Assembly: GCF_000150275.1 (NCBI RefSeq)
Contig: NW_002060943.1
Coordinates: forward strand, 10,974,878-11,038,877
Direction: 5' to 3'
Source of the DNA: Trichoplax adhaerens
Taxonomy: Eukaryota > Animalia > Placozoa
DNA length: 64,000 nt
This document shows, piece by piece, positions 38,301 to 64,000 of this stretch. The position numbers and the translations under genes are program-made. The notes beneath the pieces were generated by a model. That model did no database searches, was not told the DNA's origin, and was given only the letters and a program-made list of their open reading frames with translations. Within the stretch, counting starts at the first letter, position 1. Each line of letters starts with the position of its first letter.

Positions 38301-41300
38301 GTATGTAGCTATAACTTGCAGACAGCAGTATTCTATTCTAAAATTCAATATTTTGACATGAGTTCTAGCCAAAAAGTTATGGTATTGGGTAGTAATGTAT
38401 TCATTTACTACGTAGTATATTTTATGCTTGATGAAGGACTAAAGTAAAATATTTTGTTAGTATAGGACGAAAAAGAATTGATCTTTTCCACGATCCATTC
38501 CACTCTAATGATGAGCTGCACCGACATGTAATCATATAAATCTCTTGTAATATTGCTACTTGAGTTGAGACAGTTTTACTTCTATAGTACAAGGTGATTT
38601 TCGTGCATTTAATACTCATTTAGAGAATTGAGTTTCTATAAAAGTTTATCCACTTTCTATGTCAAACTATCAGCACCATTGCATTAGTTACTCATATAGT
38701 GAATACTTACAGCATCAATATGATATAAATCACCCCGACGTTTATGAAGTTCTTTAAGAATAGCTAAAGAGCCTCGTTTAACTGCATAAAACAGCGGGGT
38801 AGATCCTCCTTCCTATGGAAAGGTAGAAAGTAAATTTATAAATATCAAATCATATTCAAGCCTTACAAACATTATCATAGCTATAAAAAAAAATAGCTAT
38901 AGCATAAATAGAATGTATACGGTACATCCTAATGCTAGATAGACATAGTAGTCAATAGAGTATTTCAAAAAATTATTTAATCGTTTAATAATAAGTAGGA
39001 CTATAAAAATTCTCTTATAATTGAAAGAATGAACATGATATTAATATTCTGGATTTCTATCGCTAATAAAGCGCGGCTCTACGATTCTACTAAACCATGG
39101 ACTACTAGATGTACCAAAAATATGTAAAAAAATTTAGAAGTCTACATCGATACATTAACATTAAAGCTAAAATTAAATAATAGGTATCTAGTTCCGATCT
39201 ATTTTAAATTACAACCGATAAGACTGGCAACTAATTACATATTAATTTCACAATTGTACTAAACCTATAATTTAAGTAATTAAGCGAACGAGAAGATGAA
39301 AGTACCCAATTCCAACTTAGTTTAAAATATAACAGATGAGTCTAGCAACTGACAATATGCAACTTTACAATTGTGCTAAAAGTGGTAGTTTAACAAATAA
39401 AATTATTAATGAAATGAATTTATCTAGTCCGAAATCTAGATTAAATTGTAGTGAGACTAGTGACTAATAATGTATTACTTCACAATTCTACTATACCTGT
39501 ACCTTAATAAATGAAATGAATACAAAGATAAAATTATCTAGTTCCAATCTAGTTTCAACTTTAATCAAAAAAGGCTACGAATATTAATCGTACTTATCAA
39601 GTATGAAACTCTACTATGAATCGAAAATTAAGTCAAATGAACAATCTTGGCCCACTAATCAAGTGCAACTATCAAATTCTAGCATAAGCTCAATAACATA
39701 AAGTGAAACTAACGTCTTGTGCATTGGGATCTGCGTCGTAATTGAGCAAAATTGTAACCGCATTTAAATCTCCATTAAAGACCGCTTTATGAAGGACAGT
39801 CTCCTTTCTCGCTCCCTTAATAATTCAATTAAGAAAAAAGAAATAATTTTTTGGTATTAGTAATTGAGAAGTGATTTTAATTGAATTTCTGTATTCTTGT
39901 TATGGTTAGTTGGCCTTGGATAAGTCTAAAGAATGATCTAATCCTGCAATCGTATTAGCCGATATCACGTATCTTACAGTAATGCTAATATCTACACCAT
40001 TTCGAGACATTTCTTCTAGTAGCTTGATATTTTCTAGCTTGGCCAATTCAAAGATATCGTCAACGGTAACCTAACCAATTACAATCATTATTATATTACA
40101 GAAACTATCATATATACTTTGTTTAACTAGTAGAACATCCTGCATAATCTAAAATAGAAATATATATATATATAGGATAATTTCGCTCTTTACCAACAAC
40201 TTGATAAGTTCAACATGACACGTCTGAAAGGCGTAATCGATGGCCTTTTTGCCTTTCTAGTAGATATAGAATGAAAGAGAAAGAATAACATAAAATACAT
40301 GTACAATATTTATCATTTATCTATTTCACTTTGATAACATATAAACTTACGTTATTTTGTATGTCTAATCTCGCTCCTTTTTCGATCAATAAGCTGGTAC
40401 ATTTATAACTACCGTTCATGCAAGCAAGATGAAGTGGAGTATTACCAACCTATATCCATCAAGATTGTTAGAAATGGGCAATTTTTTTAATTTGTCGAAA
40501 GAATAAATAAAAATCTGATGACATCTGATAGGTATTGCATGAATAACCGATAACAGTTAATAGTTCATTTTAAACTAATATTTAACATCGTTCTCATTAA
40601 ATATTAAAAAGAGCATCGGCGATATTCTTAATTTCTAAGGTTACATTTACTACATACAAGAAAGCAATTTAAAGATGTAAATGGTGCAATAGAGTAGGGA
40701 TGATGTTACGGATTTACAAGCGTCTCTGTATCTAATTATAGGATTTCTTGTATTGTATTCATATCGGTTGTACAGTATTGCAACCTTATCAGAGCTTAAC
40801 GGCACTAGTTCTGTTCCGCACTAGATCAGTAAAGGACTATATTGTACAGTATATAAGGTGGTGAGAAATCAGAATAAAGATAGATATTCACGTGGAAGCT
40901 TAGCTGACGATCTCGCTTCAGTTGACTGAGAGCATACCAAAAAACAGACGCTATCGTTACCGCTAACAGATGGTCTAATAACGTAAAGGGGATTAAATCA
41001 TTTTGCTGAAACGTACGTTATTAGCACTATTTAGGTCAACACCATATTGAATCAAGGTGCCGATCACTTCTTTTCTCCTGTAAGCTGCTGCTGTGTGCAT
41101 TGGTTTCCATTTTGCCTAATGATGATTAAAAAGTACCATGAAAATTTTTATGCAATACTATTGTATAATTTTGAAGTAATAATACTGAATACTTTGGCGT
41201 AAAACTAATACTTTAAGATGATATGAATACAAAGTAAATTATTAATTATCTCGATATATTACATTATTGTCTGCTTCAATTTGACCTCCATGGTCATATA

Positions 41301-44300
41301 GCAAGGTAAAAATTTTGCAATCGCCTTTCATTGCAGCTTGATGCATTAATGTATTTCCATATTCCTAATGGAGTAAGGAACAAGCAAAAGAAAATGTCAA
41401 CCTTTAAAAGCCGATTATGGTTTCAATTTTGAGTGATCATAGCAACATCAGAATAGCTTAAGCTACTAGAAGCACTAAATCGAGCAAAAATTGGCTTACA
41501 TTGGAATAGTTAGGATCGGCACCATACTGCAATGCCCATTGAACTGCCTTATAATTCCCTTCCATGACAGCCAATCTCAATAAAATTTGCTGATAGCAAA
41601 ATAAATTTATCAACATGCTTTAATTCAAAGTCCATCGAAGAAAATTTTAATAGAAATCTACACAATTCTGCAGCATTTAAGTAATCCCAATGATCTGTCA
41701 AGTTAATCTTTCTTTATCGATTCTATCTTACCGGTTGATCTATATCGTTATTGTTTTGAATACTCTTATACAGTTTTTCACTCTGTGACATGCTTTTTTC
41801 CACACCATCCTTCTTGCTAATCTATAATGAAAATAGTTATAAAGAATTACTAATTTAATTTTTATCTACTTACACTCAATAAAGAGATTCATCGGTAAAA
41901 TAAAATAAGAAATTGATCGACTACTTTGTAAGCGTTTATGAACCTATTAGATGGATAAAGTATAATAGCTTCAAATAATAAAAAATGAATTTCTTATATT
42001 AATAGTTTAGCTTTTCACCCACAATTGAAAGTACAGTATTTAGATTTACTCATGTATAGTATTGCAAAAGATATGTTGAAGTAGTTCATGAAATTTAGCG
42101 CAAAGTATTCTCAATTGTAGATCGCCTAATTTAATATAAATCCGTTGAAAGTACGCGTATAAATACGAAAATTTAGCCTAATGTGCTCGTGTGCTCATAC
42201 CAGTTATATAAATTAGATAGTGTAGTAAATTATTACAAAAATTACTCTTATCGAGGCTTTACCTGATCAGTAGCTAAAATGTAATCAGTTTTAATATCAT
42301 CTAAGGTCAAGGCTGATTCCACTTCGGGTTGAAATAAGATTCGGCAGGCATTTCATTTATATTTTAAAGTGAAAACAAATTCAAAGCATGAAATTAGAAA
42401 TAGAAAACACTAACGATATGAAATAAAAGGAGCTAATGCTGAGTGTAACCGTTAGAAATTTTATTGCTAACTATCCATCACTTTAGTAAACTTTAAGAGA
42501 ATTTTTATTTTTACTATCTAATTAACTATTGACCAATTTTGGAGATAATTAAGCAATCGATAACCTAATGTATTTTATATTTTGGACAACAATAATAGAA
42601 ATTTTATATTTTTTTACCAACTAATTCTGGATAGCCTTCTATCTGGATAGCATCAATTTCACAAAATTGATTTACTATGGTGCAATCAAGTTCAAGCATG
42701 ACGGTATCCGTTTGAAATGGAGGAATCTGAAAAATTTAATAGGTGAGTAATCGGTTTTAAGCCATAATACAACAAACAGTCATAAAATCTTTACCACTCT
42801 ATTCAATTAGTAGAAATAAGATAGTCGCTATTCTATCGGCATAGTTCTGTTAAAGCAATCCAGTGCTTTTAATACTGATCTATTAAACACTATAGATTAA
42901 CTCTATTTATCTCTAACCGTTTGCAGAAATGGAGCAAATATTCGAGCAATCTTGTATGATAATGGAAACTTGCTTGGGCTCATTTCCCAAATTGGGATCC
43001 ATTGCTCTTTGTCTTTGTTCCATACACAGATTCCTTTAACAGCCCCACAGTTATAGGTTTCATAGATATTAATTTTCTTGATATAAATGGATTCTTCAAA
43101 TTTCACCTATGGCACAAATTATTGTCTTTGTGAATCAAACTAATTACATATTCTTATCATCAATTATTTCTGCAAAAGAATGCAGAAATAGCATCTTGCT
43201 TTAACGTTAAGGTTAGGATTTATTGAAATGATTCATTATAGCTTTCTAATTTCGTTGTTATACATAAGTAATCATTAGTAACAGTATTAGTAGTATGGTT
43301 ATATCTTTGTAATCAAATTCTGTTCTTCAGGATAAAAAAACAAATTTGCAATATCATTCTGTGGTGGAGACAGTAGTTAGGTACAATGTGATAATTGCGG
43401 TAGGTCAACGTGGTGGCTGCCGTGAGTAAAGTGTGAATACTAACTGTGACTAATAATGCAACTTAAGAAATCTAAGGTAGAAAACGGCAGTATTTGTAGC
43501 AATGGCATTAGAACACATGCAGAGAACATCATTGTAGGATTAGATACAACATATACCATAACAGGTTATAGAATAGCAGATGATTGTAGAAAATAGCGAG
43601 GACTGTAATAACTAAATGTAGTAAGCCATATTTGAACCTAGAGCGAACAGACTGTAGATATGTCTAAATATAAGATCAATACAGCATGTCTATATTTAAG
43701 AGTAAAATATAGTTACAGTATATTCTAAATACACTACACATTCGATATTATACGCTAAAATTATAGCGATGTGTTTTACACGATACCGGTAACTAGCTAA
43801 TCTCGCATATTTGAACGCTCGTTGTCCGTAATGAATTACGTATGTTATGTATTTCAGTTATCTATCTGGTAAGTTATTTATATTAATACTTTTAATAGAT
43901 CAGAAATGGAGGAATTAATGAAATGAAATAAAATTTGAAAAGAATAGCTACTCCAGGCTTAGTTTATAAAGCAAATCTCAATATAAAAGTGCTTGTTGAT
44001 AACTGATGGTTATTATAGATTCGTATATATGATAAACGTTTCTTGGTTTCCATCGCAGAATTTATAACTATACTACTCACCCACAGATTCTACATATACT
44101 ACAACCTACTTCGTAATAGAATATAATCTAAGTAATATAACTGGTATAATATTAATTAAAGCAATTCTTAAATTATTAAAGCATTATAATATTGAGATAT
44201 AAATTCTAATAGCTGACGATCATTTATAAGGTAGAACGGAAATTTATACAACTAGGCGGCTTGCTTCTAGAATCTATGGAAATTGTAGGAATATCTTTAT

Positions 44301-47063
44301 AGAATATTGTCACAAGTTGTACAATCGGTATGATATAGACTAGCGAATTTCTTTCAAGATTTTAAAACCATTTTGATGTTACAATGTAAAGTCTTACGTT
44401 CGATGATCTTGATGATTAATATCTTACTAATCTAGCGTATTACAATGACGTTTAAAGTGTTTTTAATGATACGTATTTTTATACACGAAAGATTCGATCA
44501 CGTCTAGAAGCACTATTGAACGATATGATACTGTATTGATATATTATTGATTGCAAAAATTTGACAAAAAACGATCGTATAACAAATATAAAGTTCGTGG
44601 GATACTGTTTGACATCTAATTAAGAAAAGAAAAGTAATCGCAAATCATGAATCATAGATTCTTACCACAATGCACTGATCATTATCGTATTTGCCCTGAG
44701 CCCAAGCTCCTTCTAAATGACCATACCTAGGATAAACAGTAGGAGGACCAATGACACAGTCGGCATTCCATCTAAAGCATAAAAGATAAATGTCGTTTAT
44801 ATACATGGCAGTAGAGACTTAAGTCTGTTTATTTACTTAGAAAAACAAGTAATGGTTAATATCACCAAACTAGATATGAAATTTTTTTACCATAACATGC
44901 ATATTCTAGTATCTTAATTATTATGACATTCGTAATAATTCATATTCTAAAACTAGACATAAATGTTTTCGTGGTTAAAGATATGTAAAAGTGTCACAAA
45001 CCAGCTTAGTGACAAGGATAACGTAAAATAAATCTCTAAATTACTATAGTCTCCGGGATTCGGTATCCCTTGACTATCTCACAAGAATTTAGACGCCTTT
45101 GATTCTACGTTAAACTCAACTAGACAATTGAGAACTACTTTATTCAACTATCTGACGGGCTTATATACCCTTCTACAGCAGCTAACATTCATGAGTCATC
45201 TTATATAAAATACTTAGGTGAGAACATCTACTAATTAATTTTTCACAGTCGGACTACAATATATCCATTCACAGAATCATTTCAGTGCACATTACAACAC
45301 AGCATTAAATTTACTGTAACATATTTATAATTAGAGTAATTCCTATTGTAAGTAACTAGTTGTAATATATTATCACTATATTATATTCACCAAATTTAGA
45401 TAGCTATTTCTTCACGGTAGTTCGTACCGTGACAAAAAGATATAACAGTTTCGTTAACTGCATGAAACGGAAAATGGCGAAAATCTAACAAAGGCTATAT
45501 AATGTCGCTAGTGTTTGGTAACTGTTTTGCTGTAAACTGATTTCGTCCAAACTGGATATAAAAATTTTTATCATCTACGACATAGACATTCTAATATCTA
45601 TTTTGATTACTGTAATATACGAAATAGTTCATATTTTACTATAGAGATGAGTATTTTTACTGTTATAAATATGTGGAAGATATACGCGTACTATTTACGC
45701 TAGCTGCACGAAATTAGTTACAGGACTTGACCGAAAAAATAACGAAAATCTATTAGAGACTTTATAAGGTTAGAAGTGCTTGCTAATTTTGTAGATTTTC
45801 TTTTGAATTTTGATCATTTCTTAGCTGTAAACTGATTTCGTACAGTCACTGTAACTAAGATATCTTCAAATCTATAATATGCGTCATAGTTACTATCGCC
45901 AAATTAGATGTAAAAAGTTTTGTAACCAAGGACATCAATAATCCTAATTACTAGAATATGCATAATTTAACAGGCGAAGGAGAAACCTCAGCTGGAGGGG
46001 GAGAATTTAATACCAAATCTCATTCTACGTTTAACTACAGTAGGAAATGATGAGAATAGAAATCTAACCTGCAGTTATCCAATTGGCTTGAGTAACTCAT
46101 AACTTCATGAGCCCACAGTTTCTTTCTTGGTGGTGGTGGTGGAGGTTTGTCTTCTTTAACTTCAGTCTTTTCCGATTCAGCATCAGTTTTGTCTGATGCC
46201 TGAATATCTTTTTCTGATTTGGAATCTTCAGTTGCCGAAGGCGATGTTTTTCCTTTATCGGTCGTTGTTTTTGATGCCTGTGATTTTGATACAGTTGTTG
46301 CTGTTTTACTATCGGCCGTAGTTGTTGATATTGTAGGATTAGTAGAAGTAGTTGATGTTGTGGGATTAGTCGAAGTGGTTGGGGTTGTAGGCTTGATCGA
46401 AGTGGTTGGTGTTGTGGACTTAGCGGAAGCTGTTGATGTTGCTGGCTTAGTAGAGGTTGCCGGCGTTGTTGGCTTGCTAGAGGTAGTCGATGTTGTTGGC
46501 TTATTACTGGAGGTAGTCGATGTTGTTGGCTTGGTAGAAGAGTTTGGTGTTGTAGACTTGCTTGTAGGCTTACTTGCTGCAGTCTTCGCGGTGTTTGTTA
46601 CTTTTATAGGCTTACCACTAGGTGTCAGTGTCGTAGGTGCCGTTTTTGAGGTCGGCGTTGTTGGCTTTTTAGCTATAGTAGATCCTGAAGATTTAGGAGG
46701 CTGGTTTGCACCTGGAGTCTTGCTATCAGTAAAGAAATTAGCATAAGCTGGCTTTTCTTCTGTCGGTGGAGAAGACGAATTTTCCTGACTTCGCATCTTC
46801 AAAAATAGCGGAGAGGATGCCAGAGTATTAGGTCTTTCATTCGCCGCGATAGTCTTGCTTGTTTTTTGGGGTAGTGATGTAACAGGTGTTGGATTAGTAT
46901 GATTAGCGGATGTTACATTAGAATTTGATCCATTATTGGATGCGTCCGATATCGATGGCATCAATATTTGGGGGCCAGATATGTTGGGAGCACTGTTTCG
47001 TGGAATTAAAGGCTTTGTAGGCTTATTAGAACCCCTCGTATAGTCCGCCGATGGGCGAATCAT
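26392..47063 (-). CDS. Ankyrin-repeat TRPM-like cation channel, paralog A (low-complexity N-terminus, FBXL4-N-like domain, ~18 ANK, SLOG/MHR, 6TM, TRP box)
   Basis: Phase-compatible exon chain from ATG 47063: 47063-46069, 44771-44666, 43106-42918, 42726-42618, 42321-42263, 41821-41732, 18 phase-0 ankyrin-type exons 41589-34956, 34126-34046 (GGKIHF...SK), 33699-33331 (YIRMTS...[15 protein letters not shown]), then MHR exons ([19 protein letters not shown]; [12 protein letters not shown]; DDRLDFV; FIWSILARR; WGNATCLQI), S2 [16 protein letters not shown], pore [24 protein letters not shown] box WKFQRY, and stop TGA at 26394-26392. Confidence 0.85.
28740..29110. repeat. Intronic degenerate direct repeat (~135 bp x2; ~28740-28875 and ~28975-29110)
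   Basis: gcagacttattaaa.gggt.taatcat ... tataaata.tc.gca ... agtaatcctat.ctaatatactt occurs twice. Confidence 0.75.
31739..32552. repeat. Intronic degenerate tandem duplication (~370-440 bp x2)
   Basis: Collinear shared anchors in 31739-32090 and 32112-32552: taacctaaaaata, ttgctactttt, aatacgagtataat, ttagattt.caatta, ttgatag.cc.tagctgcat, agcttttata.tctagtctt..ctagtt. Confidence 0.8.
33746..34015. repeat. Intronic degenerate tandem repeat (~140 bp x2)
   Basis: ttatcttaaa...atactaa.aatt.tg.aattg...gactgatat.c.gattaata.gat occurs twice. Confidence 0.7.
37620..37922. repeat. Intronic tandem repeat (~112 bp x ~2.7)
   Basis: aattta..cattatc...ttt.tacta....taaatt.tag..aa.ag.aagga.tgatg occurs three times. 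Confidence 0.8.
39165..39560. repeat. Intronic tandem repeat (~118 bp x ~3.3)
   Basis: Recurrent tatctagttcc.atct / agact.gcaact.a / tt.acaatt.t.cta units. Confidence 0.7.
42618..46120 (-). other. FBXL4-N-terminal-like (discoidin/galactose-binding-like beta-sandwich) domain exons of paralog A
   Basis: Spliced translation: [145 protein letters not shown]. The motifs SSQ / GPPxVYPxYG / ETYxxGAV / ARxFxP / E(I/L)DAxxxxG match my recollection of the FBXL4 N-terminal domain; no search was run. Confidence 0.7.
45470..45860. repeat. Intronic degenerate direct repeat
   Basis: aaaat..cgaaaatcta ... gctgtaaactgatttcgt occurs at ~45470-45550 and ~45735-45845. Confidence 0.55.
46069..47063 (-). other. 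First coding exon of paralog A: Pro/Ser/Thr/Lys-rich low-complexity region ending in [21 protein letters not shown]
   Basis: 342-aa ORF with no signal peptide. Donor AG|GTTAGA at 46069/46068 is phase-compatible with the exon at 44771. Confidence 0.75.
46300..46580 (-). repeat. Coding ~27-bp degenerate minisatellite (KPTTSTTSS-type 9-aa repeats)
   Basis: Recurrent gttgttggcttagtagaggtagtcgat-like units on the + strand, giving KPTT/NPTT repeats in the translation. Confidence 0.8.
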
Positions 47064-50000
47064 GTTGTCTTTATCGATTTAAATCCTTAATTAATCTATC
47101 AATAACAAAATGAGAGGAATGAATTCAACTCAATACTTAATAAATGACACTACCAGTAATAAAGGTAATTTAATCGATTTCAATATGGTGTTTTAATACG
47201 AGATAACAAATAAAATTATTTCAGTTTTTATTGACTATTTTAATATAATAATTAATCCGCTTTACTTTTGATACAAAAAGCACCTAAAAAATCCTATTTT
47301 ATAAATCGATCACGTTATGATGGTGGTGACTAGCTTTCCATGATACTTTACTTGTTATACGAAGTATTATAAGACTAAAGACATAACATCTATTGAAATA
47401 CAATGCCTAACTTATATGATGCCTTTAGATTTAATCTCAGAACATGGGGGAAAATATTTCTGTCGATCATAAAAGAACCGAATATAGCTATCCTCTTCGC
47501 TTAAATTGTCATTAATTCCAATTTTATCGCGCTGACAATAAAGCAATTTAGCCTAGTTCCTAGTTTTCTGTCTCGATCTTACAACCAGTAAATTCTTAAT
47601 ATTGATTATTCATAAAAGAAACCTTCGGTACATTCTACTCTTACCCACATTTAAGATTAGGCATCTTTGTAACTACTGCTGAAGAAATCCCAGCGTGATA
47701 GATAGAGCCTGCTAGGGTGCTGTCTATAAATAATAACACTATAACATCTCAAGTGATTTCTTACGCAAATAAATTCACTGTATATGAGATGACTTAATAG
47801 TCCTACAGGGAGAAAACTAACGCAATCTAAGCAAGAATGAATCATGTCGGAAACGCCCAATACTTAATAGATAGAAACGAATAAATGATAGTTATTCGAG
47901 AAAAAGTGTAGGTGAAAAATCGTATTTACTGGAACGATAGAATAACAATGATAAATAAAACTATAGGTTAGCAATAATGCTGTGGAAGGAAATAACTAAT
48001 TAAGATTAAATTTACTTGATAAAGTATAAATAGAAGTAGAGAAAGAATCGAACAGATAAAACATTAAAAGAGAAAATTAGCTTTCCGTGATAAAAAAACG
48101 TATTTGTACGATTCATTTCACGATAATCATAACTAAGCAGGTTGTATTGCTTGATTCATATCGTGTTTTATTAGCCAAAATAACATAAAACATTTCTATT
48201 TAATCTTTCAAGATGAGCAGCACCATCTTACCTGAAGTTAAACTTGATCGATGTCTAAATATTACCCACTATGAAATGCTGACTGATCCTTTTTGTAATA
48301 ATAGTCTATCATACTATTCTTTACTAGATAGCTATTGATTGAGAATAAATTCAGACGCCATTCAATGGCTTATATTAATTAAACTATTCTAATGGAGTAA
48401 TTTAGAATGGTACCTTTCCAATCTTTTACAAATGAAAAATGCCTTAGTCGTATTGCTATTTACAAAATTGCATAATGGAAGGAAAGTATAATAACTACGC
48501 CTGCATTTTAAATAGTTGATTATAATAACTGATTTACAGATAAAGTTATACAAATATTATCACAATAGGTAGCTGCATTAAGGAATAATTTACATAATAT
48601 CTCCACAAATGGAAATTGTTATTATCATTTCAAGGTTATAGTCATGCTAGTTGGATTGTAGCTATTGATCTTGATTATCTACAAACAAATGCTAATGGGA
48701 AAATAATCTCGGCCTAATCAATATTGAACGTATTAAGATCTTACTTATGGCCAAGTGAGAGTGTTCTAAAATTGATTCCAAATGCTTCCAGTCGATGTCG
48801 TGGCTATCGTTCTCATACTAGCAATTAAGGTTAAGACTGATTGAAATGCTATCAACCAATATAGTTAATTTTTCTTCTACTATACTTATTAATGAGATAT
48901 GATAGCTATTGTAATGCCACTGGATAAATTATAATGTATTATAAATATCGAACAATGACTCAAACTGGAGAAATATTTAGAATTAATTAAAACTTGAATA
49001 GTATGTTACTGCTTCACAGACATTCATTATAGGAAATTACTAAAGAAGGTTGTAGTTGTTGCCTATTAATATTATATCATCTCTGATGCTATTTTAGACA
49101 GACAGGGTTTATACTGAGCCAGACACATAGGGTTAATGTTATAGATATTTATCTAGACATTATTCGGATTCAGTTTTGGTACATGTTACATTTCTAGGAA
49201 CTCTAAATTGGTACATAATGTTAACTTTCATCAGTATATATGCTGCAATTATGATGAAACTAACGGGTAATTTTGATTATAAAATACAGTAGCAGTTATG
49301 TTCCATTGTCATCGAATACAGTGCGAACTTGAAGACTTTCTGGCTTCTCTAAGTGTTTCTTTAATAATTATGTGCTATATACCTGTGATATATACCAATC
49401 ACGAGATTCCAAATTTTAGAAAAATAAGGGCTTTATTGAATCTTATACAAAGATTGACTACACACAGCTCTACTCTAGCCGAATACTACTACTAAAGACT
49501 TTTAGAACGAACTAACAGAATAATCTAAAGTTGCATGCTTTTATACTTTTCGTAGCATTCGCAGCTACAATCCGCATGGCAATCTTTTACCTTATATTAC
49601 ACATAGTTAAATTATTCTTAGAAAGACTATTCTACTGCGGACCATCATTAATCCAATATGGATACGACTACAGTACTTACGTAGACATTATTCACACCAG
49701 CCAAAGTACAATGAATTAACCATATCCTAATATATGATTTACAGTTCTATTTTTACCTATAGCCTTATTAGTAACTCAACAGCTTACTGTATATAGTCAT
49801 ATGTACTCTAGCATAGAGTCTATACCACTACAGTCTATAGTTATAGCTACCAGATATCTCTTAGGATGAATATCTACCGTACATTATACTAAACGTGGCT
49901 AATAGTCTACAATCACAATACTAGTTACATTACAATACCGTAGAAAGATACAATTTGCAGTTAAAATACGATCATTAATGTAGCAATTTCGAGAATCTAG

Positions 50001-52777: not shown

Positions 52778-55700
52778 TTAAAAGATTTTCCCTCTATCGC
52801 GTGCCTCGAATTTCCGCCAATAAGTAAATGCCATCCAGTTTTCCCATGCTTCCAATTTTGATATATTAATATTTTTTCTTGATATTTGGATAGTAGCTGA
52901 AAAAGAAGAATCAAATTTTTATGATATGACTACGTAAGCAGAATTACGACGCAATAGTAAATGAGAAGGTAAGAGTAATAGGTGAACTTACTTGTATTAT
53001 CATCAAATTGTTCCTTATGGCGGTGGCTATATTTAGCCCAAGCATATTTTAATAGTCGATAAAAATGTACTATTATTATGAATGGTGCTGGCAAAGCAGG
53101 TTTTTTTACAAATTCTGTGATCAAAGTATATCGTTGTGATTTCCAGATGATATCGGAATTCTCTTGAACTTTAACATAAGTATCACTGAAAAGGAGATAA
53201 TCAGAAAGAGTATCAATACAGTAAAAGTATTAAGTAAATGAATTCGTTTTTCAGTATTAATCAATATAATATCTGCACTTTAGTAATTAAGAAATGTAGA
53301 TTAATTAGCAAATGATAATTTCAATGAGGTTTTATCCTTATAAAATATTTTAGATATTTTGTACTGAAATTAATGTTATAAAAACAATACTAAAATTATT
53401 GCACAAGAAAATCAATCGAATAAACTAATGCAACTGCGGTAACTTTGGTCTATAGTTTTATCTTCTCTGAGCAATAAGGAATTTTTATAATCCATACATT
53501 AATGCATCATATTACTGTAAATATACGGAATATACCACAATAAATCTACGCAATGATTCAGCTAACTACAGTAGTTATGTGCTAAATAGGTAATACAGCG
53601 ATAGTATCTGGTGTAGAACTGTCTATCTTAATTAATAAAGTAAATGTTGCTAGTACGGCGAAATAGCTCACTTGTACACTACCACATACTATATTTTAAT
53701 AATTCAGAACTTTGAGTTGTCGGATTTCGAAGCTAGGATTAAAATTCGTGCGCTACATCATACTAGTATTTATGGACATTCTGAATAATTTTGCAGTCGG
53801 TTCCCCTCTTTTAAACTAATTTAATAAATATTTACTAATCTAACTTAATTTTCTAAATAATACTCAAATGTTTCAAAAACTTACTTAAACACAGCGATGA
53901 GTAAGTTGAGAAGTAAGATATTAGTTACCAATACGTAAAAGCCTAGCAACCATGGCATAATCCATGCATTGTGAACACATTTTTCATTTTTGCCAATTAA
54001 AGTTGTATTAGGGCAGTTTCCATTCGTGACTAAATCAAGAAAGAATTCGCCCAACATCTGGTAGTATGGTTTGTATAAAACTTTGCCGACAAGTGTAATA
54101 TCCCATGGTGAGTTTGGATAGAGTAAAGCTTGAGAAATTACTCCATAAGATACCATAAATATGGATAGAATTATTAGAAACCTGGCTAAGTCGATGGTCT
54201 AAGAGTAAGGGTATTATACAAAACTGATTAGAACTTGAACAATTGAGTGTGACTAATTTAGTCTCATCACTTATCGTAATCAATTTATCAGCTAATTAGC
54301 ATTAAGCTTATGTAGTTTAAGTTAAGAAATTCGCTAAGTATTTTGTAGGTGCAGTATTTACCATCCTTCCGATCATTACCAAAAACGGACCGAATGAACG
54401 ACTAACTGCTAAAGCTCTCAAAATCAATAAAGCGAATGTAATAAAAGATAAGCAATACAAAATTCGAGCAATTTCAAAGTTTGTTGTACTAAATCTTAAA
54501 CCCAGTCCAGTGTAGAACAATATGAATGCAACGATAATAGTAATATTGATAACTTGAGATATATAAGATTTGAATTTTAACAGGTTGCTTTCAGCATCCG
54601 TGGTAATCAGCTGTAAAAGATGAATCGAATTTTCAAAAAAGTTAGAATGAATGTCCGATAATTATAATATAACATACTCACAATCATAGAAATATTTGTT
54701 TTGACATCTGTGCTGTATACGTGTGATTTAGCATTTGTCTCATTACACTATGTTAGATAATTGCGTTACCTGTCGTATTTCATCACATACTAATGTCGAC
54801 ACCCATATCACCGTTACAATTTCTGTACCAGCCATGTATGACGTATAGAGAGTCGACATTAGCACATTCGCAAAGAGTACCAAAAAACTGATATCGGATA
54901 GCTATTTCAAATGGTAGTAAAACAATATCAGTAATAATATACTGTAATTAATTACAATAGGCTATTCTAGTAATGCCATCTTTACATCGATATTCGAATC
55001 ATAAAATTGATGGTACCACAAATATATCATTTTAGCATTGATATAAAAGAATTAAAAAATATCACAGCATAACTATCACTGCTAAATTTATTTATAGTAA
55101 AAAATAATCTTACTGTATGAATAAAGAATTTAGCTCTCGCAGAATTCCAAATTTTTATTAGCTTGATTAGTATTAGAAATAGAAAAGCCAGAGTTGAATA
55201 GGAACTTCGACTTTCGTCATCAGAATCATGTTCCTTTTCGGATTCCTGCGGACTGATTATCACGGCTAATTCATCATTGTTGCCATCATAATTAATTGGT
55301 TCTACAGCTTTAAATCTTTGTAAAACCGTTGGCTGTAATAGTTATAATTTAGGAGATCGTTAAGATAACGGTTTTTAAAATCATCTGGCTGACTTAATAA
55401 GCATTTATTAAAGTTAGATAACAGCAGAGCGATCGAAACTAAGACTTAAGATATTAATATCAATAATTAACTGCACGGGAATAATACTGTAGCGAATAAA
55501 ATGTGATAGTCCCAGAATATAAACTCTATTTACGTGAGTTTGCAAATTGCAATTGTAAAAGTATTAAATTTATAGTAATTTACTACTTTCTTAAAGAATT
55601 AGGAAGTAATTAATAGGCCATAATATTATAACAGTTTACCATACCTGATCAGTCCACAAATTATTTAAAATTTGCTGATAACTTGGCTCCGCTGTAAAAT

Positions 55701-58700
55701 GTTGATTGACAGTGGTAGAAGATAATTGTACTAGGTTGCAACTTCCCCATTCTGGTATCTCCATTCGTAGTAAAATAAATGTGCCTTCTTTATCATCTGC
55801 ATAGCAAGCTCTTAATAACTGAATAGCATGATTATGGAATTCCCTGCAAAACATTATAAAGATAATAGTAAGACAATAAATATCATAAGGTTATCATACA
55901 CCTTCCGATAAGTAGATACTGCGCTACATTCAACAGATCGGTAAAAAATATTTCAATCAACAAATAACTCTTTCATATAAGTTATCCTGACAAAAATACA
56001 AGTATAAGTTAAATGTCTTAACATTTAATAATAATGTTGGACATGCAGTTACTATCGTATCGATATAATACTCAACTCCGCTTTTTGCTCCATTTCCTTG
56101 CTTTTCTCTGTTTCTCCCATTTCATTAGCTACTTCTGATAATTTGAGTAGTAAATGTCTAGCTATCATCGCTGCTGCAATTGGGTACTTAACCTTCTTTA
56201 ATAAATATGCAGCAACAGCCAGTCGGTTGCACAGCACTGCCCATAAAAAGTAGTCATGTGTAGGCCATTGTAAGTCTTTTGCAATTAAGTATGTGCTAGA
56301 AAGTAGGCTAACAGAATCTTCTAGGTCATCTGGTTGATTATTATTTTCGATTGGCGTCAACTCTATTTGAACTAATTCCTGAGTTTCATCAATATTTTCA
56401 CTCAATTGACTGACGGATCGAGCATCTTCCACTATAATGGGGACAGAGCTTATTTCTTTACTTGAAGTTTCAAAATTAGCATAAGGATTCCAAAATCCAA
56501 ATCCTATCAACTCTTCAATGACTTCTCCAATCTCACTTAGTTTGTCGATTAAAATATTCTAAAGTAACCACATAATAATACTTATCTAGTAAGCATACAT
56601 GAAAATTAAAGCAAGATTTTAATGGAGTCAGTTATAAAATTTCACTCCGCATACCTTACTCTGAACCTTGACTGCTATACCCATAGAATTCCTAAATAAA
56701 CGTTTCAGCACTAAATTACTCCGGAACTTTTATTCTATTATATTTCAAGTAGAAGATAGCAAAATTTAGTAAAAAATATCTCACTCTATGCAAATAAGAA
56801 AGCTTTAGTAAAGAGTTGAAATCTTTAAAATTTTCTATCTATTACATATAGCAATTATGTAGCATGCAATAATTAAGTTACAGTGCCAGTTATCATTCGT
56901 TTAAAAATTAAGTATACAGTATACACTTCAAGGAAAATCTGCTCTATACGTGTAACTACGGTATATTGATAACCGCTAATCTGCTACAGAGAATTTCACT
57001 GAAAATAAAACAAAAATAAACTTTTATTTGTATTAAATTACCATATGAGCATATAAATTCTTTAAAATAGGTGTCGTAAGGATTTGTTCAACAGTCAATG
57101 AACTGTTTAGTATGTCTGTTATAAAGTCCACTCGGTCGTCGATTAGAGCTTCTTTGATAGCCGATTCTAAGTCATTTTGTTCTATATTCTATTGGATTAC
57201 AGTAATAGGATGTTAAAAAATCTAGCACTACTTGTAGGTAAAACTTGAAACAAAATATCATTGATTTTTATTAAAATTTGTTTAATTACACATTTTAATT
57301 AATCTAACCACTTTATCCTATCGATATCAAACTATTTTAGTAATACTAAAAGACAATTTCTTAACCTGATTGCTTATCAACCCGAGAATCTGATCCTTTG
57401 CTAAGTATAACTTATTAAATTTTGATGCAATTTCCACTTGCTGGGTATCTTCAATGGGGTCCAATCCATCTGAAAAAAATTATACAATTAGCTCACTATA
57501 ACGGTAATTATCAATATGTAAATTTTAGTTACGATTTAAATCTTGACTTAAGAAACGATTTCAATAATTTGCGGTAGTAAAAATTCCTTTGAAATGAGTA
57601 AAGTTAGCAATAAGTGTTTATTTACCCTTCATTAAAGCTTGAATCATTGCAACATCCATTGAGCCTTCATTAATGTCGTAAACAAGCAGCTGAAAGTAAT
57701 ATCGTGGAGGATTATTATAATGTAATAAAATATATCTTCTAATTACGTTCAAATCAGCCTGCTTAGTAGGCTGAAGTTCTACATCAATCAATATCATGTA
57801 ATGTGAATTCAATTATTTAATGTGCAGCAAATATATTTTAAAATAAATTCTATTACAGTAGTACTTACAACATCGCGATAAACCATCAAATCGCTAATTT
57901 TACGATAACATTCGGTAATTTCCGTAAAATTATAATGATCAGAAAAATTGAAAGCCTTCCTTAAGAAGGCCTTAATTAGTCTTTCACTATTGCGGTCGAT
58001 GGTGTAATTGTTGACCCTGAATTAAATTGTAATAATAATTATCGTTATGAATTCTTAGATATCATTTTAGTGGCTGTTTAAGTTGTGAGCTAATTGTAAT
58101 AAATCATTATTCTCATATTGCATTAAATCATGTCCTCCGTTCCATTATGATCCACTATTACAAGTCGTAAATTAGCTTTCGTTTAAACAGCTGATTCCAT
58201 ATCTTCTATAAATTTTTATAGCTACTATTGTAAAGGACAAGGAATATCCACTATGATCATTTTATAGTTCATGAATACTGGTCACGTTATATTGCAGCTA
58301 GACAGAGATTCAACTCAAAATCGTTTAAATTATCTAACTAAAAAAAGCAAATGTCATTCTACTATGATTGAAGTATGATTAGCTTTCTTTTATAAATAAC
58401 TCTATGACTGCATGGCGTTGCTCGCAAATAGTTGGTTTCCTGAGCTTAAGCTTAGATTGCGATCATGACCAGGGTCTATGTGTGACTACTATTGTTTATA
58501 TTTATCTTCTTCATTACGTATATGTTATATCTAATATTACTGTAGACGCATTGGGACATACTCTTTGCCTCGATGATCTTTAACCGTTTCATCTACGACA
58601 CAATTTTCATACGCTAAGACCAGTAAATCCGCCGCACCACCGCTATCTTTAACCAAAACGATAGGAAAATTGAGTCGATGTACATCCTTACTGTAAATTT

Positions 58701-61700
58701 TGGTAGTATAAATTGCATGATGAAGTTTTAAAATGGTATTGTAACCGCCTCCAAATACGATATGAATAGAAGGAATATCGCAAACTGCAAATAAAAATAA
58801 AAAAATACTCTATTAAGTATAAATAATTAATTGGCTAGAACATTACGAAAATATTAAGGTTATTCAACTGCCTTGATTGATTATTGTGAGATTTAAACTA
58901 ATTGGATAGCTACTGTGCTACTATATGATAGACTAAATACAGTTACTATAAAACTTAACTTTTAAGTACTCTAACTTTAGATAATCAATAAGTCATGATT
59001 TCACCCATTATTGCAGTAATTGTTGCAATAATATTACATTCTACTTTGAAAAGCAAGACTCACCATATAAATATTCTCCCATTAGAAGTGCACGGACGTC
59101 TCCTTTACCCTTTTCATAAGCTTCATTAGTGCTTTGCCTATCATTCTTCTTATTCTGTGAGTCATCTTCAACAATTGTGGTGCTAACACTTATCACAGTG
59201 TTTCGTTCAAGAGCATCATCATCTATATTTACTGTTTTAGTGCGAGCATTTACAATACTTCCTGGTCGATGGGGAGCGCTCACAATACTTCCTGGTTGGG
59301 CAGAAGCGTGTACATTCTGTCTTGATCGATTACGAGTACCAGCAAGAGCACCTTGTCGAGAGAGAGTACGTGATCGAGCAGGAGTATCTTGGATACTTTC
59401 TGCTACAGTTTGGTCATCTACGATACTTGGTGCTTTAGCCAGGCCATCAACCCGGTTTGCTGCACGAGTAGGACCACTAATAGTACTTGTTCCAATACCA
59501 CTGCGACCAGGACCATCGACCATATTGTCTTTTCGTAATTGGGTAGGACCTCCAATAGTACTTCCTGCTCTAATACGGCTACGATCATCAAAAGCACTTG
59601 CTGCTGAAGTAGGATCAATATTGAGGCCATCTTCATTATCATTCTCGATTTCTTCAACATTCTCACCATTATCAATAAATACAAAGTAATTAAATATAGG
59701 ACTAAGTTTAATTGGAAAATCAGGTTCCTCATATGTCATCAAGATTTCTTCTTTACTAGTTTCCTGTAAATATTAATGATGACATGTACTTTAAATTTGC
59801 TACTCTATAAAGTAATTAATTAAGTAGTTATTATTGACATTGTCTTAAGGGTGAGTATTAAGTCAATAATTTATCATATGAGTCATAATATCAGTTGGCG
59901 TACTAAGCTTACATTATAATGCGTGAAATTATACTAGAGATAAAAATTCTCGTATCGCTCGATTTTTAAGAGCTATATTATCCGTGTAGTAAGCGGTATA
60001 CATACATTCTATACGGTGCATATGTAATCAATCGTTAAAAATTTTAGACCTTATCATCAGTGACGGATCTTGGCTTCCAATTGGCATATCCTATTATCAT
60101 ACTTTGATCAGAGTCAAATTCTGCACTCCCTTCCATCGATTCGCCAATAAATTGTATAAATCCACGGTCATCGTTATCATTTGTCATTAATAATGCATTC
60201 ATTGAACCAACCGCTTTCGAAATGGCAAATCCAAAAATTTTCTTCAGTTCAGGATTAATACTATCTTTTTCTTGAATACCGCCTTCTAGTGCAATTACCA
60301 AACCGGGTGATGACATACCCCAATACCAGCGCAATAATATCCTTAAGTCAACAGCTGGAGTGTTTGGTTTAATTTTCATAAACTGTTAAGCATCAAGTCA
60401 AGAATATTATGTATTTAGTCAGCCCTCATCAACTCAATTATCGATGATAACCAATGAAATAGTAATATTCTATTCATTGTTGAGTTCATCAGAAAGATAA
60501 TGTATGAATATTGACATGCTATATCCTCTTGTTCTATCTCGTTCTCTTTAAGTTGTACAGCGCTTGATAAAGCGCAATTTTGTGCAGATATCCAGTTACA
60601 TCCTCATTATCTTATATTACCTTTGATGTTTTGACTTTTCCATTTTCTAAGGTAAACTTAATTTCACCTCCTCCAATGAATCCCCTTCGGCGTATTATGT
60701 GAGGTAGTTGTTTCTAATTAGTAATAAAATGAATTACATATCTATCAGTATAGGATAAATCTAAAAGCACATAAATGATAAGGAAATAGTGCATATATTT
60801 AAGCTGCACGAGTAAATAAGTTTTGAAAATCATTTTGTCTATACATCATTAATATAATTCTTACATTCATAAATCGTACTATTACATCCACAATTTCCCT
60901 ACTATCATTCTGGCGAGCAATATCAAGAGGAGTCTCTAGCTTCTATACTCAGATAAAAAGCCGTCATTCATCGATAAAGTAGCAATCCTAACCACGATAG
61001 ACTAACTGGCATAATACAAAGAGCGCTAATAACACTGGTTATAACAAAGTTCATAATAGGGTATCTAAACTATTTATAGAGTCGTTTTAAATAGATATTA
61101 CTTGATTTTTCCATATTTGTCTCATTACTATTTAATCATAAATTATAGTACAAACCTATCTTTCTGCTATCATTAAACTGTAATATTTTTAATAATACAA
61201 AGTAGTAGCGATCATCTGTTTTATCACTCGTTGTAATGAAACTTACACGAATCTCTAGTCATTAATTTACTAAATATTTCATGTATTGCAGCCACGAAAT
61301 AACTGCTTTAGTAGGAACTCGAAATAGTATTATAAAATACTAAATATTTCAATTATTATAATCTATTATCTTGTTTATGCTTAGATTAGCAGTATAAAGA
61401 AAATTACACTGAGCGGTAAAGTAAGATATAAGAATGAGTTCTGGACAGTATATACGATTCCAATGAGCCATCAATTGTAAATTTTATCATAAATTAGCGT
61501 GTAAGATTTACATTGTTAAAGATTCCAATATTTCGATCACCATTTGATTTAATTTCGTAGAAATTCATCAGTAATTCCATACATTCAACTCGTTCATTCA
61601 AGGCAGCGATGTGCAATAATGATTGTCCTTCAGGCAACTTTTCATAAAACGCTTTTAAAATCTATATTAGAGGTATACAGGTTCATATGAAAAATAGTAG

Positions 61701-64000
61701 AAGTTGGATAGATTTAATTAAAGATCATGAACGAAGACAAAAAAGTTAGCGTACTATAGAAACAAATTCACTAAGCTTGATTCAGTTATATACAATTTAC
61801 AACGTTATCAAAATAAATCGGGTTAAATTTTCATACTTCAGGATCCCTGCTATAAGTTAGATCTTGAAGTGTCTTAGATTTCCCATACTTAACTCCAACA
61901 TATAATGGTGTTTCACCTGCAGTCTAGCGTTCAATATTATACGAGAGCTGAGTGAAATGAGCACTAATATAATTTGAAAGATTTTTCTATTTTTATAAAT
62001 ACTTAATTACGTTGGAGTAATGAGAGCATGACCTACATTTAGCGATGTCATATTGGCACCAAAACGAAATAATGTGTTCATGCAGTGGATCTCGTCATCT
62101 CTAATTGCCTTATGCAAAGCAGTTTCATCATTGCTATCCTTATCCTGTAAACAAGGTATTGTAATACTTACATGTTATAGGCATAAACTGATACCAAGTG
62201 ACAAGTATTTAAAGCCGTAGAACACAGTAAATCAAAAATATCATTTTCTACAAAATTACGTAGCCAACAGACTTACACGAATGTTAATTAGATTATCATC
62301 ACAAAGAGCCTGTAAATATCGGTCTTTGCCATCTTTAGCAGCATTATACACGTCCATAGTAGTAGCCTATTATTACGGCGTATAAAACATTTGTTGCAGA
62401 ATTAGTCGAGTCAGGTAGTAATAAATTAATCAAGTTCTACATTTTACGAATATTTTATTACTTAACGACAAGTCTCGTACAGGTAAGTTAAATATGATAA
62501 ATTACGTTCCTACCCGCTGAGATATCGCTTTTGATTTATCGCATGCTAATAAAAGCGTATTACAACTTTCGTGATTGCGTTCTTTTGCCAACTGTTGAGG
62601 AGTTCTAGCATCCTAAAATAGTAGTAAGTAAACCAAAGTAGTGCATTATACCTATTTTGTACTTCAGTATTTTAAAATTTTCACCGCTTTCTTCACTTCG
62701 ATCATATATCGTATAAAGATAATTTGATGTATTACTCACTATGATCATAAGTAGACCAGTATTGGTAATAATAATGCTATTATTTAAGGTTAAAAAGATA
62801 GATAATAACCTTATTTAATAAAGTTGTGTCTAATCTATTTTCTATTAACCAATCTAAGATTTCATAAAAGCCCAAGGCAGCTGCCATATGACATAAATTA
62901 TTGCCGTTCTATGCAAATTTTTTCCAAACAGTTAGCAATTGTCGGCAGGATACATTGCAATTTGAAAAAAGTAGTAAAGATTAACTGTCAGTGTAATAAC
63001 AAATCTTAGTGGTATAGAGTACTTAGAATACTAATAAACCTGCAATTACCTCATCTAGAACATGGATATCGACATCTTTAGAATGTAGCCATTTCAGAAG
63101 TTCAACACGATTATTTTCAACAGCTATAAAACAAATATTCCGCTTTCCCTGTAGAAAAAATTTTTTATGTTGTTGTGAGTTGTATTGAAGTTGAGATAAT
63201 CTTCATTAATGAATCTATTCCTAAATTTAAAGTTTAGATAAATAAGCGTAATCATACAACCTTATCTCGCCAGGAAAGATCAACATCATGGTCATTTAAC
63301 CATTCCAGGATTTCTTGATGACCTTTGACTGCTGCATAGTAGGTTAGAGTTCGATCTTCCTATTGGTAAATTATCATAAGTGATGTAAAAATGAGAATTT
63401 CGTTGAAATAACAGATTTGAAGCCTCTGAACTTATTATAACAGCAATTCTGTCCTACATCAAAATTACAAATTACACCCTAATAACACTACGTGATATGA
63501 TATACATTAATGGTACAAGTAAAACATGTTAGAACAGTTAATTATTCTTAGAATTAAAGCTTATTTCATACCTCATCTAATTCGTAAATATCGACTCCCT
63601 TTTCATAAAGCCATTCCAAAATGTTTAAATGGCCTTGATCAACCGCGTGCCTAATCAGGCTCCAGCCATGCTGAACAATATAGAATATATTTTTTGTTAT
63701 TAATGTTCGTTATTACGTCTACTTATTGACTGTTATAACTTATATCTAATACTGTATGTGACCAAAATTACTGTCGAGTTATTGTTAATTACATAGGTGA
63801 ATAAATAAATAATTTAAATACAACGATTCTGTAGCGTTGGTAGTAGAAATCTTAAGAAATAAAAGCTTTTTGATATTATACTTAGACTTTGAGCAAACAA
63901 TTGGTCACCTTTTACTAACTAATAAACGGAAACATAACACTACTCCCACATTAAATATCACAAATTCAACCTTATCAGTGCAGGCAATGATTGCTCCATG
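52778..64000 (-). CDS. Ankyrin-repeat TRPM-like cation channel, paralog B (5'-partial; runs off the window end)
   Basis: Ankyrin-type exons at ~63971-64000, 63573-63671, 63261-63359, 63050-63148, 62810-62908, 62514-62612, 62277-62366, 62037-62144, 61837-61923, 61512-61661 and 60865-60942. Then 60621-60713 (GGGEIKF...SK), 60050-60382 (FMKIKP...[17 protein letters not shown]), MHR exons, S2 [16 protein letters not shown], pore [25 protein letters not shown] box WKSQRY, and last exon 52896-52778 ([25 protein letters not shown]). Confidence 0.85.

Follow-up and report, generated by a model that had tools for sequence, protein, structure and literature searches.

Evidence that tandem genes of Trichoplax adhaerens join an ankyrin-repeat array to a TRPM channel core

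Among the group-1 families of transient receptor potential (TRP) channels, TRPM and its sister TRPS are the ones that reviews and phylogenies describe as having no N-terminal ankyrin repeats, and an ankyrin-free TRPM ancestor has been inferred from that absence. A locus of the placozoan Trichoplax adhaerens raises the question of whether this rule has an exception. Within the 64,000-nt stretch of contig NW_002060943.1 that we analyzed (positions 10,974,878 to 11,038,877, hereafter the window; G000:C1414:10974878-11038877 in the genome of 105,631,681 bases and 1414 contigs used for whole-genome searches), two tandem genes, A and B, each appear to place ankyrin repeats ahead of a TRPM channel. 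A preliminary description, made from the letters of the window, had taken B as independent confirmation of a fusion that is old, under selection, and expanded into a small tandem family, and that is unlikely to be an artefact of assembly or gene modelling. We are now highly confident that B is an intact, transcribed gene of the minus strand, running from about 68 kb to about 52.8 kb and encoding one polypeptide in which ankyrin repeats are joined directly to a complete TRPM core. Several lines of direct observation lead to this reading: the structure of the transcript at the junction, B's homology with A, the conservation of the same exons in another organism (on a contig that we call L004), and the TRPM-type domains.

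We addressed whether the ankyrin and TRPM exons form one message by placing contigs of four public runs on positions 58500-64000 (5501 bases). The DNA has ~31% GC and short introns of the GT-AG type. Two of the runs (X7 and X8) are recorded as RNA-seq, a third (X4) is probably RNA, and the fourth (X6) behaves like DNA or unspliced RNA. Contigs of X7, X8, and X4 splice out all 14 introns between 58785 and 63970 as GT..AG (CT..AC on the forward strand), every one of them in frame. Record 21 of X7 (760 nt) runs through the exons that we call SLOG, GG, TP, LHIAA, and GETP and into NDET, and record 26 of X8 (1001 nt) covers a 700-nt exon, SLOG, and GG and enters TP. The two splices that make up the junction itself, TP to GG and GG to SLOG, are canonical and in frame in three runs from two studies. 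Given that single contigs run from the SLOG exon into ankyrin exons, we conclude that the two kinds of exon lie in one message and not in two genes. Joined together, the 15 RNA-defined exons of B give 2481 nt with zero stops, and neither a frameshift nor a stop, which the preliminary description had named as grounds for giving up the fusion, was found in the spliced sequence between the ankyrin and SLOG exons. The suspicion of an artefact is likewise answered by these canonical, in-frame joints in X7, X8, and X4, and by L004, an independent genomic contig with the same exon chain.

Translation of 57000-64000 recovered every motif that the preliminary description had listed for B between 60050 and 64000, in stop-free minus-strand frames and in the listed order: Trp-containing repeats (LEWL, LKWL, LDWL), RTPxQ, TTMDVY, NDETALH, LHIAA, TP, GGxIxF, and the RWYW SLOG exon. 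The listed exons were correct, but an ankyrin exon of 87 nt (GETPLY, 61837-61923) between NDETALH and LHIAA had been passed over. The window end truncates gene B within its eighth ankyrin exon, of which 63971-64000 is the 3' end (whole exon 64072-63971); this exon has weak Ank matches, is homologous to A 38711-38812, and has its donor at 63970 fixed by the RNA joint 63670|63971. Eight ankyrin exons in total start past 64000. Downstream of the eighth exon on the minus strand come four 99-nt exons, W1 (LEWL, 63572-63670, phase 0/0, Pfam Ank_4 8.4e-07, above the cut-off), W2 (LEWL, 63261-63359, a weak Pfam Ank match, 39% identity to A 37445-37543), W3 (LKWL, 63050-63148, Ank_4 0.0021), and W4 (LDWL, 62810-62908, Ank_4 2.9e-05, above the cut-off). 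The middle ankyrin block is closed by the RTPQQ exon (62514-62612, 99 nt, 57% identity to A 36709-36777 over 23 residues), and the last block opens with the TTMDVY cap exon (62277-62366, 90 nt), equal in length and phase to A 36377-36466. RNA joints delimit each exon from W1 on both sides down to the SLOG exon.

The remainder of the last ankyrin block consists of the NDETALH exon (62037-62144, 108 nt, Pfam Ank_2 and Ank, with an equal-length exon in L004), the GETPLY exon (RNA joints 61661|61837 and 61923|62037, also 87 nt in L004), the LHIAA exon (61512-61661, Pfam Ank_3 2.9e-04), and the ETPLD or TP exon (60865-60942, RNA joints 60942|61512 and 60713|60865), which carries the last ankyrin repeat and is the last exon before the TRPM part. 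The lengths given earlier for the latter two, 150 and 78 nt, are now set by spliced RNA contigs; LHIAA is also 150 nt in L004 and, by its homologous donor, in A, and TP is 78 nt in both. Of the 10 exon frames in the ankyrin region, 7 match Pfam Ank families at E <0.05. Scores above the cut-off were obtained for Ank_4 (29.6 and 24.7 bits against 22.7, on frames 63569-63709 and 62783-62908) and, on further ankyrin-type exon frames, for Ank (30.2 and 23.0 bits against 21.1) and Ank_2 (32.1 bits against 27.3). The exons thus encode what defines an ankyrin region, namely tandem repeats of ~33 residues that match Pfam Ank models.

Immediately past TP, the GG exon (GGGEIKF...TSK, 60621-60713, 93 nt, RNA joints on its borders) is the first TRPM-derived exon, and we identified it as such by comparison with the exons upstream of five other SLOG loci. 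It is followed by the SLOG (MHR1) exon with LRWYWG (60050-60382, 333 nt), which matches LSDAT_euk (3.6e-10; 40.1 bits against a cut-off of 25.7, the signature of SLOG/MHR1-2) and, in the PDB, chains of TRPM7, TRPM3, TRPM2, and TRPM8, in which the alignment starts at about residue 105-170. The 700-nt exon (59064-59763, RNA joints 59763|60050 and 58784|59064) encodes the NYFVFID strand of SLOG, and its counterpart in A is 151 nt long. It also carries a ~190-residue low-complexity stretch that is absent from A, abounds in Gly, Ser, Thr, Arg, and Pro, and looks like a fast-evolving disordered loop inside SLOG; among ten sequence differences found in RNA contigs in this exon, seven change an amino acid. 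The second SLOG exon (GGGYNT...DSGGAAD, 58562-58784, 223 nt) covers LSDAT_euk positions 176-236, is 58% identical to A, and is followed by a phase-2 intron common to A. A loose end of the B RNA contigs past this exon continues into an exon near 58016.

Further downstream, the rest of the channel is of the TRPM type. Exons of the TRPM2-like domain lie between the SLOG and membrane exons at 55639-56558, collinear with A 29281-30019, and match PF25508 with 39 bits on 56055-56558 and 26.3 bits on 55639-55890 (1.3e-09 and 1e-05; cut-off 27). The transmembrane exons at 53884-54661 encode a pre-pore stretch, the pore loop (LGEFFLD), and the last membrane helix; Ion_trans scores 23.1 bits (4.9e-05) on the single pore exon, just below the Pfam cut-off of 25. 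That exon matches 63 PDB sequences, and all 60 of those listed are TRPM chains (best TRPM3, 1.5e-16), with no TRPA, TRPN, TRPC, or TRPV among these 60 of the 63 matches at E up to 0.01. The channel domain is in this respect not of the TRPA/TRPN type. LGEFFLD of B aligns with YGEVFAD of TRPM3, LGEFF standing opposite YGEVF, and S6 of B is nearly identical to that of TRPM3, with which it aligns at NILLVNLLIAVF. In TRPM3, TRPM6, and TRPM7, permeability to divalent cations is associated with a Glu at this position of the pore. The TRP-helix exon (53044-53190, 57% identity to A 26689-26835) reads IWKSQRY in B and VWKFQRY in A, a WKFQR-type box, and a C-terminal exon (52805-52891, 52% identity to A 26452-26538) holds a C-terminal W-rich motif also found in A. 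B accordingly has a six-helix channel with a TRPM-type pore loop, S6, and TRP helix.

Where, then, does B depart from other TRPM channels? It has the same SLOG, TRPM2-like domain, S6, and TRP helix as TRPM3, TRPM7, TRPM2, and the choanoflagellate TRPM2 chanzyme, which are its best matches among solved structures, together with the GE pore motif of TRPM3. In place of the Cys-rich pre-SLOG segment, however, it has ~18 canonical ankyrin-repeat exons and an N-terminal beta-rich domain, in addition to the large low-complexity SLOG insertion, and neither a NUDT9H nor a kinase domain was seen in B. The absence of N-terminal ankyrin repeats, a trait by which the literature describes TRPM without using it as a criterion, therefore does not hold for B, in which ~18 ankyrin-type exons precede SLOG. 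A Cys-rich segment ahead of the melastatin region is reported for TRPM (PMC13143021), and B lacks it; its GG exon retains only the GxIxF...K part. TRPA1 and TRPN/NOMPC are also six-helix TRP channels whose cytosolic N-terminus carries a long ankyrin array, but the SLOG that B carries between its ankyrin repeats and its membrane part is absent from those families.

The neighboring paralog offers a comparison. A occupies about 26.4-47 kb on the minus strand, in tandem and head-to-tail with B on the same strand, and it yields Pfam matches to LSDAT_euk (1e-15) and Ank (1.1e-04). When every open frame in the B region was compared by BLASTP with those of A, the matches proved collinear all the way from the N-terminal domain to the C-terminal W-rich motif. 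We compared 22 exons, beginning with the first ankyrin exon and ending with the second SLOG exon, with splice sites set by RNA for 14 of 22 introns in B and by GT-AG sites and phase compatibility for B's seven upstream exons and for A, whose borders are predicted except for one splice observed in RNA. Across the junction, A has LHIAA at 35447-35596, TP at 34956-35033, GG at 34046-34126, and SLOG at 33331-33699 (33331-35596, minus strand), with predicted GT-AG introns in the same phases as B.

Nineteen of the 22 exon lengths are equal in A and B, and all borders are AG/GT. Intron phases are identical throughout, with twenty of phase 0, then one of phase 1 (after B exon 59064-59763), and then one of phase 2 at ...KDHRGKE|VNNY. 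Both 22-exon models are open without a stop (B, 3090 nt; A, 2568 nt), and among the exons that differ in length are GG and SLOG, with 81 and 369 nt in A versus 93 and 333 nt in B. The proteins share ~37% identity overall and 17-59% per exon. The claim that the exon layout is shared across the junction despite strong divergence is thus borne out, and non-homologous intron positions at the junction, the other outcome that the preliminary description had named as refuting, were not seen. A is also B's nearest relative in the pore exon, at 53% and 49% identity versus 37-50% for other loci. The two genes have domain order and intron phases in common, but A has no ~190-residue SLOG insertion and does have a long first exon rich in Ser, Thr, and Pro: an open frame of 347 residues at 46038-47078 (minus strand), whose 3' end aligns with B's first recognizable exon (67873-68004), is probably this first coding exon of A, and B lacks such a stretch.

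Paralog A is transcribed too, since loose ends of the contigs include pieces of the A SLOG exon and a spliced TTMIDIY|NVSGNDET junction (36377|36104). Some B RNA contigs switch to A sequence at short stretches that the two genes share (60228-60258; 62132, around NDETA). These are assembler chimeras between the paralogs and not real transcripts, and an RNA joint at 58581|60228, with 21 letters on one side, is probably a chimera of the same kind.

A second comparison extends beyond this genome. In an exhaustive search of representative proteins (12 matches), the only close relative of the B SLOG exon was P0001, at 60% identity. P0001 is encoded on L004, a 2447-nt contig with 31% GC from a public run (SRR30664517_82752) of another organism, probably of another placozoan lineage. 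L004 begins with the end of a TTMD exon and continues with exons of 108, 87, 150, 78, 93, and 333 nt, all with phase-0 AG/GT borders. These six complete exons correspond to NDET, GETP, LHIAA, TP, GG, and SLOG of B at identical lengths. Because L004 is 56% identical to B and 29% identical to A, we conclude that it is B's ortholog and that the A/B duplication is older than the split between the two organisms. This, together with the ~37% identity between A and B, agrees with the proposal of an old fusion.

The B and L004 loci align at the DNA level over exons only and not over introns (BLASTN). Between B and L004, Nei-Gojobori dN/dS is roughly 0.22 over the ankyrin exons and 0.25 over GG and SLOG, values taken near saturation of dS; the ankyrin part is therefore as constrained as the channel part, in line with the earlier suggestion that the fusion is under selection. 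We took dN/dS from B versus L004, and not from A versus B, whose silent sites are saturated at 37% identity.

How did a TRPM gene come to carry this array? We found ~ten first-SLOG-exon loci of the TRPM type in the genome by LSDAT_euk, on contigs C1399, C1406, C1407, C1409, C1411, and C1414 (L006-L013). On one of these contigs, C1406, several SLOG exons and pore exons fall within 91-118 kb, an arrangement that resembles a further tandem cluster of TRPM genes. No ankyrin exons were found within 10 kb upstream of eight other SLOG loci, either by BLASTP with all A and B exons or with a profile of 20 A and B ankyrin exons, and the same profile, as a positive control, detected the ankyrin exons of L004. 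At five other loci, the exon before SLOG is of the usual form: it carries a GxIxF-type motif (DAYGxIxF at four of the five) and ends ...AK or ...AR before a phase-0 intron. In four, the pre-SLOG exon or its upstream neighbor contains cysteines. The GG exon matches the 3' part of this ordinary exon (DAYGxIxF...AK), of which A and B retain only the last 27-31 residues. Given that only the end of the pre-SLOG exon is retained, the ankyrin array appears to replace the Cys-rich segment and to be joined just before GxIxF. The array is made of symmetric phase-0 exons and meets the TRPM part precisely at an exon border, which would fit exon shuffling.

Searches for a source or for relatives of the array gave negative results of limited reach. 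No donor was found in the animal's own genome, where two single-ankyrin-exon queries, too short for the purpose, returned only themselves, and the GG exon (a 33-residue query) had no PDB sequence match. A word-index search with the SLOG exon returned P0001 alone, and the long matches of the exhaustive search that we checked by Pfam had either SLOG without an ankyrin array (two octopus, one sturgeon, and one unnamed animal) or no SLOG, although such exon-sized queries are uninformative on full-length relatives, including those in other phyla. An Atlas search with the SLOG exon returned only SLOG clusters, none with ankyrin repeats.

The preliminary description had suggested extending the window to see whether B shares the N-terminal domain of A and whether more copies follow. 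We fetched 20 kb upstream of the window end (coordinates above 64000 are window-equivalent) and found that B extends to about 68 kb, with eight further ankyrin-type exons from 64072 to 65671; four of the six frames tested there match Pfam Ank families, three of them above a cut-off. Past the ankyrin exons lies a poorly conserved linker (65672-66810 in B, 41590-42612 in A), and upstream of it three B exons are homologous to those of A's N-terminal beta-rich domain, at 57%, 39%, and 44% identity. B thus does have this domain, and collinearity with A suggests that it belongs to the same message as the ankyrin-TRPM part. Its exons have no Pfam match, and their best PDB sequence match has an E value of 1.2. 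An ESM Atlas feature search returned F5/8 type C clusters at 0.87-0.90, which we take only as a lead toward a discoidin-type, galactose-binding-like beta sandwich. The FBXL4 likeness named in the preliminary description stays putative, and no F-box or leucine-rich repeat was seen here. A genome-wide search with the N-terminal domain exon matched A and B alone, and no third copy was found upstream to 83 kb. The tandem family proposed earlier is therefore real in A and B but comprises exactly two genes, with no further copies following.

Alternatively, the ankyrin exons and an ordinary TRPM could be two neighboring genes, joined only in rare read-through, with the main channel free of ankyrin repeats. 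Such an arrangement gains some room from the fact that contigs cannot show transcript starts and from a Met at the second codon of the SLOG exon. However, the TP-GG and GG-SLOG splices recur in canonical, in-frame form across the three runs and two studies, the GG exon has neither a Met nor the Cys-rich segment that other TRPM loci have upstream, and the same exon chain is kept in A and in another organism under purifying selection, lengths included, so that we consider separate genes very improbable. It is less probable still, and hardly credible, that B is a decaying duplicate, transcribed but giving no working channel. The large SLOG insertion, which is absent from A and in which most of the differences seen change the amino acid, is what one might expect of decay, but 3090 nt run without a stop or frameshift, the L004 ortholog keeps all six exon lengths at a dN/dS of ~0.2, and the pore, S6, and TRP-helix motifs are intact. 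A handful of points do weigh against our reading of B as one intact gene. The contigs show every splice and stretches of up to six exons, with no single long read over the whole mRNA; RNA covers 58500-64000, and the exons upstream of 64072 and the N-terminal link are placed by homology with A and predicted splice sites. An ankyrin-less isoform may also arise from an internal promoter. The few differences in B RNA contigs comprise 6 silent and 9 amino-acid-changing ones, most of them in the low-complexity insert, and dS for B versus L004 approaches saturation (pS ~0.62), which makes the dN/dS values rough.

Even if B is accepted as one gene, its array need not be a gain. Two papers place ankyrin repeats in early group-1 TRP channels and their loss on the way to TRPM, which raises the potential that the array is an ancestral TRP feature retained only in this TRPM lineage and lost in all other TRPM and TRPS. 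This would accord with the early history that those papers propose, but in the 10 kb searched upstream of each, the genome's other SLOG loci lack ankyrin exons, and four of them have the usual Cys-containing exon before SLOG. In addition, B's nearest relative in the pore exon is A, and exon shuffling would be expected to leave symmetric phase-0 exons inserted precisely at an exon border, as is seen here. We therefore think retention improbable, and favor the view that the array was added to a TRPM gene.

The protein is built as follows. Some ~580 residues of ankyrin repeats in 18 phase-0 exons, which seem to fall into three capped blocks (about 5, 8, and 5 units), lead into a channel core composed of SLOG (MHR1/2), a TRPM2-like domain, membrane helices with a TRPM3-like pore, a TRP helix, and a short C-terminus. 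The array probably took the place of the Cys-rich pre-SLOG segment and became attached just before the conserved GxIxF stretch. The fusion would have arisen once, and a tandem duplication would then have given A and B before the L004 organism split off, and both the ankyrin and the channel parts seem to have been under purifying selection since that duplication. The product would be a tetrameric cation channel, probably permeable to divalent ions, with the ankyrin arm and upstream beta-rich domain of each subunit predicted to hang from the SLOG layer. By analogy with TRPA1 or NOMPC, the arm and this domain may anchor the channel to the cytoskeleton or to a partner, thereby localizing or gating it.

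Several other genes surround the pair. Upstream of B, at 72.7-83 kb (L002:9602-10318, L003), the plus strand carries a leucine-rich-repeat gene that includes coiled-coil exons, and an HExxH-type metalloprotease motif is encoded by exons near 82 kb. A long gene of alternating EGF-like and SRCR-like exons takes up the first third of the window (3000-22600, plus strand).

Full-text literature searches on Trichoplax or placozoan TRP, TRPM, ankyrin, and SLOG returned no description of an ankyrin-TRPM, although database gene models may already show one. A 2026 study of domain gains and losses in TRPM makes no mention of such an ankyrin array (PMC13143021), and a paper on thermotaxis lists only TRPM1-4 for Trichoplax (PMC10498350), compared to the ~ten SLOG loci found here.

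A conserved, expressed, and duplicated TRPM with an ankyrin arm of the size found in TRPA1 is a clear exception to the description of TRPM as ankyrin-free. It indicates that the SLOG domain tolerates a large N-terminal graft, and it provides a natural test of the contribution that such an arm makes to a TRP channel. As a tentative and, at present, rather doubtful extension, A and B could represent an undescribed TRPM subfamily, known to date from this lineage alone (probably placozoans), in which a discoidin-like domain and an arm of ~18 repeats were grafted by exon shuffling onto SLOG, turning a ligand-gated TRPM into a tethered channel for mechano-, gravity-, or thermosensing in an animal without neurons. 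The impact of the finding lies in channel evolution and sensory biology and does not amount to a new kind of system, and A and B are candidates for the sensors behind placozoan thermotaxis and gravity responses.

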